Source of the DNA: Oikopleura dioica
Lineage: Eukaryota; Animalia; Chordata
Assembly: GCA_907165135.1 (NCBI GenBank)
Contig: OU015569.1
Coordinates: forward strand, 9,796,001 to 9,860,000
Reading direction: 5' to 3'
DNA: 64,000 nucleotides
The notes under the pieces were generated by a model. The model saw only the letters and a list, made by a program, of their open reading frames with translations. It searched no databases and was not told the origin of the DNA. Both the position numbers and the translations under genes were made by a program. This document shows, in pieces, positions 1-5,718 of the stretch. Positions within the stretch are counted from its first letter, which is position 1, and the number at the start of each line of letters is the position of its first letter.

Positions 1-1935
1 AGCATATTCTTGTACTTGGCTGCTTTTGGCACGTAAATCTGTGTAAGGTTCGCATACACATGGCCATTGTTAACGTATTCCGGAAACTCTTCACGAATGC
101 CTTCGACATCTGACGGAACGAATTCGTCCACCGTCGAAAGAGTAAGGATCTGTCGGAAGAGCTCAGATGTCTTCATTACTTCACTTTGCTCTGGAATCAT
201 TCTTATGTGCAGAGAAGCTCTTCCCAACGAATGCTGCTTTTCCTTTCCGATTTTCGCCAGCATATCCTCCAGAGAGGCGTAATCAGACGGAATCTTCCTG
301 TTGAAGTTGTATCTTATCATTCCGAGGTCTTTGATAAGTTTTGCAAGTTTCTCGACTTGCTCGTCCTCTTCCTCGCGGTATTGCTCTTCAATCACATGTG
401 GCCCGCAATCTTGAAGAGGGATACGAACAAAGTCCGGATTGACGTGATGGGTACACCGCGGCCCATGTCGGGGTACCCAGTACTCGCCAAGTACATCCTT
501 AGATTTTGCTTGGAAACATCTCCTTTTGATTGGACGCTCATCCGTTTTTGCATTTTAATAACGTCAATTTGAGATATCTTTCGCAATTCAGCCAAATCAG
601 CTGCCTGTTTCGCCATTAAAACTCTCTCCGCAAGTTTTGCTTTCTCAAGCCAGACCGGCTTCGATGGGAACATATCTTTTGCTGTGAACGTATTGTGTCT
701 GATTTTTGATTATGAATATTTGTCCAATAAATTTTCTACATTTAAAATCACATTTAGAGTGAAAGAACACTGGCATTGTAATACATAATAACCATTTACT
801 TCTAGCATTTGCCATTTCATTGGTTGCAAGCTTCATCAGGTGCACATTGTTGTTGTACTTTTCCATAGTTGATCGAATAGTAAACAGAATGCCTTGAATA
901 AACGCATCCCCACGAATATCCTCCACTCCGAAACTTAAGACAAGCTGATTGAGCTCATTCTTCGCGTTCATAAGTTTGTGCTTGTAGAATTTGTGAGTGT
1001 CGTAGTACCAAGAACTGAGCTCATCGAAGTCCGCGTTGTTGTAAGAAATGTTTTGGCTTATTTCGTCCATCAGATCTAATCCTTCCAGCTCTTCATAAGG
1101 TAGTTCCTTTGCCGCCCTCTCTGCGTAATTGTCAAGCGCTTCCTTTAAAAATGACTCAGTTTTATAAACAAAAATCATAAGTACCTGAATGTGAGTGAAC
1201 TTATTAGCAAGTCTGAGGCTACTCTCGAAGCTGTCATGGGCAACATGACTTAGAGTTTTAAAGAAATGCACGATATGATGATAGCGATGCTCTAGAAGAA
1301 ATTTAGAAAGAGATTTATTAAAAAATCTACCTTGGCAAGTCTGCCGGGCAGTCCATGGTGCATCTTCGGCAAATTGAATAAAATTTTGCAATTCATCAAG
1401 AATATCGTCTTTTGCCCGTTTGAGGAACATTTCGAAGTCCTTGAGAGAAGTAAACACGTCGCTGTAATCGCGTGGAACATACATATAAGAATGACGAAGA
1501 GCATCCAAAACTTTTAAATAATTTTGTCCCTTTTCGAAGAGTGCAGAGCCGAGGGAAAAATCCTCCACAGCCTTGACCAGACGTTTGATTTCCGAGCTTC
1601 CAGTCGAGAAAGAGGGTTAAACATCTGTTGAGTTTCTAAATAAATACTTTTTGCTGATCAACCCTCGCCGATAAGGGTCCAAAAGAAGCATCTCTCATCT
1701 CTTGAACGCTATCTACATAAAGCTGCATTAATTCATCCAGCGTTTCATTTGACATCTGCGGTCTTCGTTGATTCCATTGTCTGCTCTCTCTTTCCAAAAA
1801 CGGCTCGAAGTTTTCCAAGTCCGGAAACTGATCCTTCAGCTGGTCGATCTCTCTCTGCATGTAAAACTCTGGAGAGTCATCTCCTGGCTGAGCCGCGGAG
1901 CAGAGCAAAATTGTCGAAAAACGGAAAATTCTCAT
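1..1935 (-). CDS. Unknown multi-exon protein, probably secreted; 3' end runs off the window
   Basis: ATG at 1935 (MRIFRFSTILLCSAAQ, signal-peptide-like) lies downstream of an acceptor-like ...TGTCAG. Long open exon 645-1568 is helical/acidic. A further open frame runs from about 540 to base 1. Exact splice sites not resolved. Confidence 0.5.
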
Positions 1936-2175
1936 CCGGGTATTAGGCGCTCGCTCTGTCACTCTACTGTGGGCACTCTGACAAGTAATTAAGTTTGTTT
2001 ATCCCCCTCACTCTTTTCAACAGTTGACTTTCGTACACACATTTTACACTTTGTAATGGAGTATTCTTGAATCGATTGAAGATACGCATTACGGCATAGA
2101 CGGGAATCATTTTTATTCGGGAATTTGACAGTGACAAATGCTTTCTGGCAGTAAATGCTTGAGTTTCTTGTGTTG

Positions 2176-3800
2176 CTAGACTTTGAACATAGTGAGAGTA
2201 TAGTTTCTCGCTTTGGCGTAGTCCACCACTGGCTTGACGTAGTCCATCTTGTCGAGGTTGTAAAGTTTGTGCTTGTCATCCCAAGAATGAAGGTGTGCGG
2301 CGCCGACTTTCTTGAGAAACGGAAGCCACTTTTGGATGTACTCGCCACTTTTATCGAACTTTTTGCTTTGGTTCCAGGGGTTGTAGATATCGGGTCGATG
2401 CGCGATGCCAGTGCCGGTGCCACCGCAGTACTGCCAGTTGCCGTTATTTACAATCGGATCGTAGTCGATAAGGTGAAGGGCGAAGAATTTTTCGCCCTTG
2501 CGCCAGTCCACGTGGAGGATCTTCGTCAGAAAGTTTGCTAAAAGATTTTGAAAAGCGAAGAATGAGAAAAATATTACCCAAGCAGAGTCGGGCCCAGTGA
2601 CGAACGTCGCCACGCGTCTTCAACTCCGTCACCATCGCATCGATGAATGGGAAGCCAGTGCGAGCATCTTCAAACGCAGCGAACAACTCGTTTTGGCGTT
2701 CATTCCACTTGACGTCTTCAAACTTGAGTTTGAGACACTTACCGGGCTCCCCGATGCCCATCTGGTGTGGAAAGTTATGGAACATGTGTACCCAGTAGTC
2801 GCGTCGAATCGTTTGGGTGATCAGCATACGTTTGTTAAGCTTTTCCCATTCCTCAACAACTTCCCTGAAAATTACAAAAGTATATATCCATATCTATATG
2901 GCCATGCACCTGCTAGACACGCATCCGAATCTTAGATACGCCGCCAGTTCTGTCGTCTTCATTTTCGGAAATGTTCCCTCTCGAAATGCTGTGGGCACAC
3001 ATCCGTACTGCTTTTGAAACTTGTCCGTCTTTACTCTCTCGATGATCTCTAGTGCGATAGATCGCCCTCCCTTGAGCTCAATCTTGTCGTTCGGATCGTA
3101 GAAGTTCATCGTTCTTTTCCAGTCAATTGAGTATTTCGATTTCGGAATCTTTTCAGTAGGCACTTCTGGAGCCGGTCGCGACTTGGTCTTTCTCAGTTCC
3201 ATCACTGAATTGAAGTTAAATGACTTTTCTTTTTTTCTTTTCTCCTTTTAGACGGTTAAAGTTATACCTTTGTTGAAAAAAGAAGGCTCAAATTTTGTGC
3301 CTTCCTTGAGAGCGATTTTTCCTGGATCAACGAGACACATGTCATGAGATGAGACAAAGGGAATGCCATTCTTCTCGCAAATTCCTTCAATTTCACGATC
3401 GCGTTTCTTCGAATAGGGAGTGTAGTCTGCGTTGACGTAGACAGCTTCGACTCCAAACTCGTCAATCATGTGCGAAACAACTTCTGCATTGTCTCCGTAG
3501 AAGAGGTTCAAGTTGCCGGAAAGCTGTTGGTCAAGATCCTTGAGCGACTCGATCATGAATTGCACGCAGTTGTGATTCTTGTAGCTGTTCTTCGAATCAT
3601 CTATCTGTTCAGGGGTGAAGATGAAGGCTGAAAGATATTGTGAACAAAGGAGCAGAATAACTTTCTGAAAAGCTTTCAGTGAAAACACCATAAGGAGTAA
3701 CCCTAAGAAAAAATTAGCCATTTCAGAAAACGCCTAGAATGATACCAATTGTTAGTGATAAAAATTAACGTCCCTAGTGTCTCTATTGGCAAGAATACGA
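2176..3800 (-). CDS. DNA photolyase/cryptochrome family flavoprotein (class I/III-like); 5' end unresolved
   Basis: Motifs FIFTPEQI, VQFMIESLKDL, NADYTPYSKKRD, LAAYLRFGCVS, RTGFPFIDA, VDWRKGEKFF, LIDYDPIVNNGNWQ, YNPWNQSKKFD. GT-AG introns, e.g. 2538-2577. Stop TAG 2176-2178. Confidence 0.9.
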
Positions 3801-4581
3801 GCACGTACAGTTAAATTCAGACTAAGAATATTGAGTCTACTGTGCGCTATTTTCTGCCAAGAGAGAACCTTCGGAAAGGTCGACACATCGTGCCTAGTTC
3901 AAACAGAACTTTTCAATCCCATATGGGATTGATATATCAAGCGTGGAAAAAGTTCATAAAGAGCGCCTCCTAAAGCTATTGGCCAAAACAAACACTACCG
4001 CGGGCGCTTTACCTGGAATGATTTTTTCCGACGCCTTCCCCGCCGCAATCCATCCTGTATTGTCGAAGAGTCTGTAGTCTCTGCGGAAGATAAAAAGTGC
4101 CTTGCTAAACTTGCCCATTTCTACTGACGATCGAAACCGATTGTGGAAGTTTTTGGCGGATAGGTCGGATTAGGAGAATCTTCCGCCCTGATTGGCCCCC
4201 AGCGATTACGGAAGATCTGCATCACTTCTCGAAAAACCCAAAATAAGAGGTTATCCAGAAGGTTATCCCTAAACTTCAGTCTCATTGGAATCGTTTCACT
4301 ACACAGACCACATGAATGAACTTATGATAAGGGATTTTCAGGGGAATCGACGGTCCCTTGATTTTTATGAAACTCTTTCAATAAATACAGATTTTTCTGC
4401 TTGTCAATCGGTTAAAATCTGCAATCTATGCTTAGCCGCTCGGCCCTAACGTGTGTTCAAGAGGGATGCTTTTTATGTACAAACAAGAGTACACATTTTC
4501 AGTAAATATATAGAAAGTTTTATTGTCAGTGCTTCACGTAAAATAATAAAGCTACTAGTAGAGTTCCTGGGCGTTATTTCT

Positions 4582-5718
4582 TTATCGCGTCTTGCGGCCG
4601 ACAGCGCGTGGCTCGTAGACGGGAATTGGGACGAGATGTTCCGAGGGCAGAAGAATCGGCGCCAGGCCAGCCTCAATCGGGAACTGATTAAAGTCTTGGT
4701 AGGAGAGGGGCTAAAACTTTTAAATTCAAAAAACAGAGGGAAGTAACTCACCCAGAATGCCCCGGCGTCGATGGCTACGGGGTGCGCGCCCATGGAGTGC
4801 GACTGGCAGTGGGGGAAGGGGGGGAGCGTGAACGGGTCCTAAATTTGAATTATCATTTACCCGCAATTCTATCAATATTCGATCTTTACCTGGAAAAGAG
4901 GAAAAGCAGTGGACACTCCCTGATTTGCTTCTGATCCGAGCGTCAATGAGAGGGGAGAGAGAGAGGAGGACTCCCGGCTACGGTAGCGGGATTTCGTATT
5001 CGCCTGAATCAAATGATTTACCCGAGCCGAGTGTGACAACAGTCTTACCTTTGCAAACTCAATCTTCATAACTAGATTGTCAACCGATGGATCGAGGGCG
5101 AACCCGTGGAACTTATCCTTGGCTTGTTCCGCGTCCTTGCGGCTTGCGAAAGTTAGAAAGGCCACCGGGCCAAGTGGTTGGTTGTTGGGCAATTTTACGT
5201 TCCTGACAGGCTGCTTTACGATGGCACACTCGAAACCTGAAAACGTCTCTCTCATAAATTGTAAGAAGGGAGAAGAAATGATCGCTTACATAAGTCTCCG
5301 ATCCGCACATATCTCTGTTTGCAAAAAACAAGTACTCACCGCTAAATCCCTGGAAGAGGAGGTAGAATTCACGCTCTTTGACATCCTGGGGTAAGCCGGA
5401 AACGAAGAGGGTTCGTAGCTCTTCCTGAAAAAGTGAATTCATGATTTATTTATTGTGAAGCGCCCAATTTTTTTTTTGTTTTCTCTTGGCGCGATTGACT
5501 TTTTGAATCGGCTCGAATGATAGAAACCTACCCGTGGGGAGTTTCTGATAGGCGTGCTGGTTGCGATTGGAACCTGAAGGAAATTTAAGCGAATTTCAAA
5601 AGGATATGGTAAGTTTCAGCGGTGTTTTCGATACCTGGTTGTTATTCTGGTCGATGCTATGCTCAGAGATGAGCGGGGTGCCACAGACGGATCCACTCTC
5701 AGACATGTCCGACTTCAT
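4582..5718 (-). CDS. RBPMS: RNA-binding protein with multiple splicing / couch potato-like single RRM protein
   Basis: [31 protein letters not shown] and KIEFAK-ANTK motifs of the RBPMS RRM. First coding exon modelled at 5635-5718; stop at 4582-4584. Confidence 0.85.

Follow-up and report, generated by a model that had tools for sequence, protein, structure and literature searches.

What does the only photolyase/cryptochrome-family gene in this part of the Oikopleura dioica genome encode: a DNA repair enzyme, or a protein that uses the same flavin photochemistry for another purpose? The gene lies on the minus strand at 2176..4118 of a 64-kb window (the whole stretch of contig OU015569.1 that was analysed; all coordinates refer to it), in which the family has a copy number of one. 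A first-pass annotation had located it at 2176-2830. This interval belongs to the same gene, but covers only part of exon 4 plus exon 5. The gene is expressed and maintained by selection. Its predicted product appears to be a new, lineage-restricted member of the family, with a pocket unlike that of any described class; the sequence is public, but only as split, unnamed models. We read the protein, with a probability of roughly 0.4, as a cryptochrome-like photoactive flavoprotein whose pocket would have been rebuilt for another ligand or partner, and which would not be the animal's repair enzyme for cyclobutane pyrimidine dimers (CPDs).

Cofactor-binding and pocket residues

Residues are numbered here as in E. 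coli photolyase, with the E. coli Phr sequence taken from the K-12 record. The window exons were never joined but searched singly, and a natural spliced orthologue (contig L003, protein P0281) served as full-length proxy. MAFFT was used to align the exons, as separate fragments, to E. coli Phr together with sets of first 120 and later 319 relatives. These nearest full-length relatives had been collected by scanning 1.84 billion representatives in full with HMMER, by scanning prokaryotic species genomes, and by a word search in which the orthologue was the query. HMMER alignments to 1dnp (E. coli) and 1tez (A. nidulans) yielded the same residue equivalences.

Described FAD sites of photolyases are R344, D372, A377, N378, and G381 (PMC8476157, PMC5812317). 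In the window protein as well as in its orthologues, the FAD contacts R344, D372, D374, N378, Y222, T234, and R278 are kept together with the Trp triad W306/W359/W382, and R226, N400, and P401 are also conserved. The first-pass annotation had named W306, W359, W382, N378 and the R344-D372 pair as conserved, which was confirmed by the 1dnp and 1tez alignments and by MAFFT with both sets of relatives.

The substrate side of the cavity was then compared position by position. The substrate-binding set of class I enzymes, E274, W277, N341, M345, and W384 (PMC8476157, PMC5812317), reads Q, R, H, L, and Y in the Oikopleura protein. Not all of these changes are unusual: Q is found at 274 in 80/120 relatives and L at 345 in 48/120, so that E274Q and M345L, which had been counted among the replaced CPD contacts, are present but normal for the clade. 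The other replaced contacts, W277R, N341H, R342W, and W384Y, hold up. The lid is rebuilt in sequence, as had been claimed (D391G, P394H, Y395R, F396P, R397D), and reads GIAHRPD versus the usual D..PYFR. The predicted pocket is changed further than first listed, by W338D, M339V, H340R, S238A, a helix ahead of the pocket that reads DAMVTEL versus the usual DAGMREL (M330V/R331T), and a Y222-T234 loop longer by six residues (4+2). The individual substitutions, with the residues found at the same positions in the first 120 relatives, are the following:

W277R: W in 118/120 relatives, F in the other two
N341H: N in 119/120 relatives
R342W: R in 118/120 relatives
W338D: aromatic in 112/120 relatives
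H340R: H in 103/120 relatives
M339V: M in 108/120 relatives
W384Y: W in 104/120 relatives, F in 7 (W/F 111/120)
S238A: S in 111/120 relatives
R397D: R in 112/120 relatives
D391G, P394H, Y395R, F396P: lid residues

Judged from these alignments, neither of the aromatic walls of the predicted cavity over the flavin is left (W277R, W384Y). The Asn and Arg in contact with dimer and phosphate have been exchanged (N341H, R342W), and so has the lid Arg (R397D), together with the rest of the PYFR lid. New charged or polar residues of the cavity are R277, R340, H341, D338, and D397. In class I CPD photolyases, R342 and R397 make contacts to the lesion and the DNA backbone. The window protein also retains the NQSKKFD motif, of which the Q and the K bind to phosphates of the DNA in the complex of the A. 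nidulans enzyme. By sequence reading, a C-terminal tail and an N-terminal extension are absent, and there is no obvious nuclear signal.

Position of the protein among its relatives

Among the 319 relatives and the solved enzymes compared, the pocket proved neither conserved nor typical of a repair-active clade. Of 12 near-invariant pocket positions, 10 are changed in the Oikopleura protein. The most deviant relative is changed at 5, mostly in the lid, and 226/319 deviate at none. W277 is lost in 0/319 relatives, N341 or R342 in only one or two, and these losses never occur jointly. If all 66 columns conserved in at least 90% of the relatives are considered, the protein deviates at 14, compared to a median of 2 and a 95th percentile of 8 for the relatives; 10 of these 14 columns belong to the surroundings of the pocket, and no cofactor or triad column is among the 14.

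The best non-Oikopleura relatives share 42-44% identity overall and 48-54% over exon 5. No close family sharing the rebuilt pocket was found in the collections searched (HMMER, word search, prokaryotic genomes). In a tree of 320 sequences, the terminal branch leading to the protein measures 0.91 (median 0.40) and its sister group has a support of 0.62. Because of this long branch and the sister support of only 0.62, no firm origin or rooted donor can be given. The weakly supported sister consists of P0037, P0062, and P0049, which keep W277, N341, and R342, carry G or Q in place of W384, and read ..TSRPLEQTILNPW or ..SEARPVSQTVFNPW in place of the PYFR lid.

The nearest sequences include P0155, P0156, and P0049 (42-44% identity), which are metagenomic and probably giant-virus proteins of class I type. 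They have the N-terminal pattern FIFRRDYRL..., ADYTPYSKKRD in common with the Oikopleura protein, and all keep W277, N341, and R342. P0155 (~44% identity) is encoded on the 43-kb contig L090, where its neighbours are an XRN exonuclease, a chitin synthase, a second photolyase-related gene (DPRP), and numerous ORFans; by its gene content, L090 resembles a giant-virus contig. A word search with exon 5 alone yielded three short unrelated fragments; the best of them, P0153, keeps W277, N341, and R342 and was therefore dropped. P0153 is a 164-residue photolyase FAD-domain fragment without the TGTD..PYFRIFNP segment and adjoins a TnpB/OrfB_IS605 gene on the 4-kb Logan contig L002.

Gene structure, orthologues, and expression

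The gene model and the features referred to in the text are given below, in the direction of transcription.

2176..4118, minus strand: whole photolyase/cryptochrome-family gene, ATG to stop; 469 codons in 5 exons, from sequence reading and a script (coding sequence 1407 nt)
4187..4197, minus strand: GGCCAATCAGG, motif resembling a CCAAT box, located before the ATG; orthologous transcripts carry it at their 5' ends (L003:1-12, L087:1-5)
4013..4118, minus strand: exon 1, start codon 4116..4118; the alpha/beta domain begins here, without an N-terminal extension; matches orthologue residues 1-35
3628..4012, minus strand: intron 1, 385 nt, GT..AG; missing from transcript contigs L003, L087, and L088
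3268..3627, minus strand: exon 2, DNA_photolyase alpha/beta domain PF00875 (Pfam 2.7e-21)
3205..3267, minus strand: intron 2, 63 nt, GT..AG
2910..3204, minus strand: exon 3, linker between the two domains, then the beginning of the FAD-binding domain
2942..3007, minus strand: lengthened loop YGCVPTAFREGTFPKMKTTELA (E. coli Y222..S238 region); Y222, R226, and T234 equivalents kept, S238A, 4+2 residues added
2865..2909, minus strand: intron 3, 45 nt, GT..AG
2578..2864, minus strand: exon 4, first half of FAD_binding_7 (PF03441; Pfam 4.6e-12); pN 0.059, the lowest among the exons
2792..2815, minus strand: QTIRRDYW, with Q at E274 (clade-typical), R at W277 (codon 2804..2806), and R278 kept
2705..2707, minus strand: outer Trp of the triad, corresponding to W306 of E. 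coli (alignment)
2585..2611, minus strand: GDVRHWARL replacing GWMHNRLRM (W338D, M339V, H340R, N341H, R342W, M345L; R344 kept)
2538..2577, minus strand: intron 4, 40 nt, GT..AG
2179..2537, minus strand: exon 5, second half of FAD_binding_7 (Pfam 4e-33); stop codon TAG 2176..2178
2503..2505, minus strand: middle Trp of the triad, corresponding to W359 of E. coli (alignment)
2374..2448, minus strand: NNGNWQYCGGTGTGIAHRPDIYNPW, with N378 and W382 kept, W384Y, and the lid changes D391G, P394H, Y395R, F396P, R397D, and F399Y
2112..2117, minus strand: AATAAA, likely polyadenylation signal ~60 nt past the stop codon

A metagenome scan with exon 4 yielded 4 contigs. Contig L003 (1581 nt) contains an uninterrupted open reading frame (ORF) of 469 residues that aligns without gaps to the five window exons, and in this alignment the exon ends coincide exactly with the predicted junctions in the window. 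L005 and L006 stem from the genomic DNA of a near-identical haplotype, and their introns are placed as in the window gene. Therefore, L003 represents a spliced transcript. All splice junctions are confirmed by intron-free transcript contigs of the orthologue, and spliced full-length transcript contigs were recovered from JGI data as well as from two SRA runs. A 246-nt metatranscriptome contig covering part of exon 4 shows 3 differences from the window, all of them at synonymous third positions. Three bulk RNA runs with the species label contained one or two partial reads with <90% identity, which probably reflects a different lineage or low expression and is no sign of absence.

The window protein and the orthologue share 84.5% of their amino acids and 76.6% of their nucleotides. 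The window therefore appears to derive from another deep lineage of the O. dioica species complex. Over the summed exons, with the four split codons ignored, the proportion of differing synonymous sites (pS) relative to L003 is 0.79, that is, saturated, and the proportion of differing non-synonymous sites (pN) is 0.09 (pN/pS ~0.11), and the frame of 469 codons has stayed intact despite this saturation. Since 79% of the synonymous but only 9% of the non-synonymous sites differ, the gene is under strong purifying selection. The longest fully identical runs between the two lineages comprise 39, 37, and 21 residues and correspond to the remodelled elements, namely the segment from N378 to the lid (39), the lengthened Y222 loop (37), and the stretch DAMVTEL..GDVRHWARLCL (21). 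Thus, constraint within the protein is strongest on the rebuilt pocket. All of the odd motifs are identical across three haplotypes or lineages.

At the 90% level, the orthologue clusters with full-length 469-residue products of two SRA runs and with two database entries, CBY23271.1 (361 aa) and CBY23272.1 (168 aa; UniProt E4X0H2 and E4X0H3), each described as 'unnamed protein product [Oikopleura dioica]'. The GenBank annotation thus breaks the gene for one 469-residue protein into two unnamed models. A repeat-rich insertion is present within the exon 4 orthologue of the Atlantic-type lineage (L005:1531-1660, L006:1-20; approximately window 2700-2712). Its termini are inverted repeats of 8 nt (CAGAGATG / CATCTCTG), and a target of 8 bp, ATCGAGTG, is duplicated. 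The insertion is missing from the transcript contigs and from the window lineage. The two split models are explained by the insertion of this element. No plain GT..AG pair that would excise exactly the insertion and one target copy was found. A literature search retrieved no paper on the protein or on the accessions CBY23271.1 and CBY23272.1, and the split-model protein was not included in the survey of O. dioica by Deppisch et al. (2022; PMC9498864).

Upstream of the gene, the motif GGCCAATCAGG is kept between lineages with saturated synonymous sites, and the transcript contigs begin at the motif or just past it; it may serve as a promoter element. No spliced-leader sequence was visible at the 5' ends of the orthologous transcript contigs L003 and L087. 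The upstream neighbour on the same strand (4872-5442, minus strand) consists of short ORFs resembling an RRM-type RNA-binding protein (..LFVSGLP..), and downstream of the gene there are more ORFs without a recognisable kind (645-1962, minus strand). On contig L004, ORFs on the opposite strand are found 3' of the orthologue.

Fold and family membership

The orthologue matched both family domains, PF00875 with 1.1e-28 (100.7 bits, cut-off 26.6) and PF03441 with 2.1e-52. Its AlphaFold model, based on a 28-sequence alignment, reached a pLDDT of 87.8 and a pTM of 0.90, with low confidence only at residues 221-233 and 394-398, which are the two rebuilt loops. The S. tokodaii photolyase 2e0i was the best fold match (TM 0.85/0.93, 31% identity); the A. 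nidulans enzyme and a variety of cryptochromes ranked behind it. The best PDB sequence match of the orthologue was again 2e0i (5.4e-66), and the animal-like/(6-4) group was less similar at ~1e-40; exon 5 of the window matched 2e0i with 2.9e-24 and 1dnp with 1.1e-23. The second half of exon 4 scored 28.2 bits to the animal-like cryptochrome CraCRY versus 26.4 bits to a class I enzyme, a gap at which gene conversion from an animal-type cryptochrome into this segment and convergence are inseparable. From these matches, the protein is predicted to be a member of the cryptochrome/photolyase family that descends from class I-type CPD photolyases.

We then compared the protein to the individual classes. 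With the class I CPD photolyases of E. coli (1dnp), A. nidulans (1tez/1owl), and S. tokodaii (2e0i) it has in common the two-domain fold, the FAD residues, the triad, N378, the NQSKKFD motif, and a length of ~470 residues without a tail. It differs from them by W277R, N341H, R342W, W338D, H340R, W384Y, the GIAHRPD lid, the longer Y222-T234 loop, and DAMVTEL. Accordingly, neither the substrate-binding set nor the R342/R397 contacts and the PYFR lid of class I (here R342W, R397D, and GIAHRPD) are found. The S. tokodaii enzyme, the closest solved structure, itself has a G in place of N341 and a shortened lid without PYF, so that part of the pocket changes may be compatible with an active enzyme. 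The two NCBIfam models for this class gave 189.5 bits (PRK10674, cut-off 506) and 182.5 bits (TIGR03556, 8-HDF type, cut-off 884.6), both models having been built for prokaryotic proteins.

The (6-4) photolyases and animal-like cryptochromes (Dm 6-4 3cvu, CraCRY 6fn0) share with the protein a His at 341, an Ala at 343, a Thr in a ..MTQL-type helix and, presumably, a Tyr two residues ahead of the conserved Pro. In the alignment to CraCRY, which repairs (6-4) lesions, H341 falls on the second His of the HHLAR motif, and PDB entries named H365N and H369M fit the equivalences N341 = His365 and M345 = His369. We also take Q274 and Y399 to correspond to Gln299 and Tyr423 of the fly enzyme, which fits at the level of alignment ranges. 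Unlike these enzymes, the protein carries L at 345 in place of the second catalytic His, lacks HHxxRH, and has both Trp walls replaced. Assignment to the (6-4) photolyases was rejected, since the HHxxRH pattern had no match; the motif reads R-H-W-A-R-L, with the last His changed to Leu.

Plant cryptochromes and CRY-DASH follow the same principle as the Oikopleura protein, in that a photolyase scaffold keeps FAD and triad while the pocket changes. Plant CRY1 has a Tyr at the position of W384. The same residue occurs in CRY-DASH, which keeps W277 and N341 and has a Q at 345 (PMC5812317). Plant cryptochromes have an Asp at N378 and a C-terminal extension, whereas the Oikopleura protein keeps N378 and has no extension. 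It was assigned to neither group: the CRY-DASH model TIGR02765 gave 175.9 bits (cut-off 317), with Y at 384 as the only common feature, and the plant cryptochrome model TIGR02766 gave 121.6 bits (cut-off 603.85), with N378 kept and the protein ending at the photolyase homology region. The motifs of the PCRY-like proteins, which resemble plant cryptochromes and occur in aquatic animals and algae, are pl1 VGLR, pl2 WRDLAY, and pl3 MWQNxG (Deppisch et al. 2022, PMC9498864); all three are absent from the window exons and from the orthologues.

According to the same survey (PMC9498864), O. dioica has only a CPDI photolyase, CBY34235.1, and an 'other' protein, with no (6-4), class II, or DASH member. 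CBY34235.1 is a different gene of the same species and the same broad class. As read from the text printed in the supplement, it has a similar N-terminal domain, GWQHNRMRM, W384, and PYFR are kept, an F is found at 277, and the N-terminal extension contains KRKK. It was not among the 120 best matches of the orthologue.

Proposed function and alternative explanations

The kept FAD-site residues and triad suggest that the protein would bind FAD and that light would reduce the flavin via W382-W359-W306, with N378 placed beside N5 as in photolyases. CPDs in duplex DNA would no longer be recognised in the canonical way, because the walls are now Arg and Tyr and a flipped-out CPD could not be clamped between Trp residues. 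Instead, the polar, charged pocket (R277, R340, H341, D338, D397) would take another ligand or partner; in plant cryptochromes, the equivalent cavity binds ATP. In this function as a cryptochrome-like flavoprotein, the protein would act in light-dependent signalling or regulation, and CPD repair could fall to CBY34235.1, which is of class I type with a near-canonical pocket.

Several observations weigh against this reading. FAD binding is deduced from the residues, two of the substitutions (W338D, S238A) lie at the FAD site itself, and model confidence is low in both rebuilt loops. The DNA-binding features of photolyases are kept (the R226 equivalent, NQSKKFD, and the photolyase-type N378), and the C-terminal tail of most signalling cryptochromes is absent. 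Since 2e0i is also without N341 and part of the lid, repair need not be abolished. Finally, the survey shows no (6-4), class II, or DASH member, and therefore a repair niche in O. dioica would be unfilled.

Much of this would fit a photolyase with a new specificity, which docks nucleic acid and uses electron transfer from FADH- on (6-4) or Dewar lesions or on damage in single-stranded DNA or RNA. We regard this as the main alternative, possible but less likely than our preferred reading. The strong selection on the pocket, the kept R226 equivalent, NQSKKFD motif, and N378, and the lack of a cryptochrome tail agree with it, as does the alignment of H341 with the second His of CraCRY, which the H365N and H369M entries fit, and the presumed match of Q274 and Y399 to Gln299 and Tyr423; such an enzyme would also fill the (6-4) gap left by the survey. 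But the second catalytic His is missing (L345) along with HHxxRH, W277R and W384Y replace Trp walls that (6-4) photolyases also keep, and R397D together with the loss of R342 should weaken backbone binding around a flipped lesion. In addition, there is neither an N-terminal extension nor a clear nuclear signal. In evolutionary terms, a new function derived in a chordate lineage from the class I CPD scaffold, apart from the known origins of cryptochromes, would make the protein either the product of a fourth independent birth of a cryptochrome-type photoreceptor, in an animal without most of the standard family members, or a convergent photolyase for (6-4) or other new lesions that has a single catalytic His (H341) and Y399; we offer this as a speculative suggestion.

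An ordinary CPD photolyase in a fast-evolving lineage, in which residues such as R277, R340, and Y384 compensate for the pocket changes, is unlikely in our view. Class I-type CPD photolyases are indeed the nearest relatives in sequence and structure, Q274 and L345 are typical of the clade, G341 and a shortened lid are found in the S. tokodaii enzyme, and CRY-DASH with Y at 384 still repairs CPDs in single-stranded DNA (PMC5812317). However, four of the main contacts to dimer or backbone are gone simultaneously, a combination that includes the loss of W277 seen in none of the 319 relatives and the losses of N341 and R342 that are never found together, and the same species has CBY34235.1 as a second, near-canonical photolyase of class I type. 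As for W277 itself, Li and Sancar are said to have found in 1990 that non-aromatic replacements in the E. coli enzyme lower specific binding by orders of magnitude. A light-independent role based on protein-protein contacts, as in vertebrate-type cryptochromes with weak or no FAD binding, would be compatible with W338D and S238A at the FAD site, with the Thr of DAMVTEL, which animal cryptochromes and (6-4) enzymes have where class I, class III, plant, and DASH proteins have Arg, and with the second half of exon 4, whose best PDB sequence match is an animal-like cryptochrome. It is improbable nevertheless: nearly all FAD contacts and the full triad are conserved in all lineages, N378 is kept, and the pocket over the flavin is most constrained, which fits a flavin-centred function. 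We give very little credit to a decaying duplicate or an annotation artefact. The split, unnamed GenBank models and the three bulk RNA runs nearly without reads might point in this direction, but the insertion in exon 4 of the Atlantic lineage explains the former, and the intact frame of 469 codons, the pN/pS of ~0.11, and the spliced full-length transcripts in several data sets argue against decay.

Implications

Cryptochromes are thought to have arisen repeatedly from photolyases, by losing lesion binding and keeping the flavin photochemistry. The Oikopleura protein looks like an intermediate case: a photolyase scaffold without a tail, in which the cofactor and electron-transfer sites are intact and the pocket is both rebuilt and the most conserved part. 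Being small, tail-less, and well modelled, the protein is suited to spectroscopy as well as to binding and repair assays, and the near-canonical paralogue offers a natural control. O. dioica is a transparent, surface-dwelling chordate. Because the survey gives only the CPDI photolyase and one unassigned cryptochrome-like protein for this species, the gene bears on how O. dioica may sense light or cope with UV.

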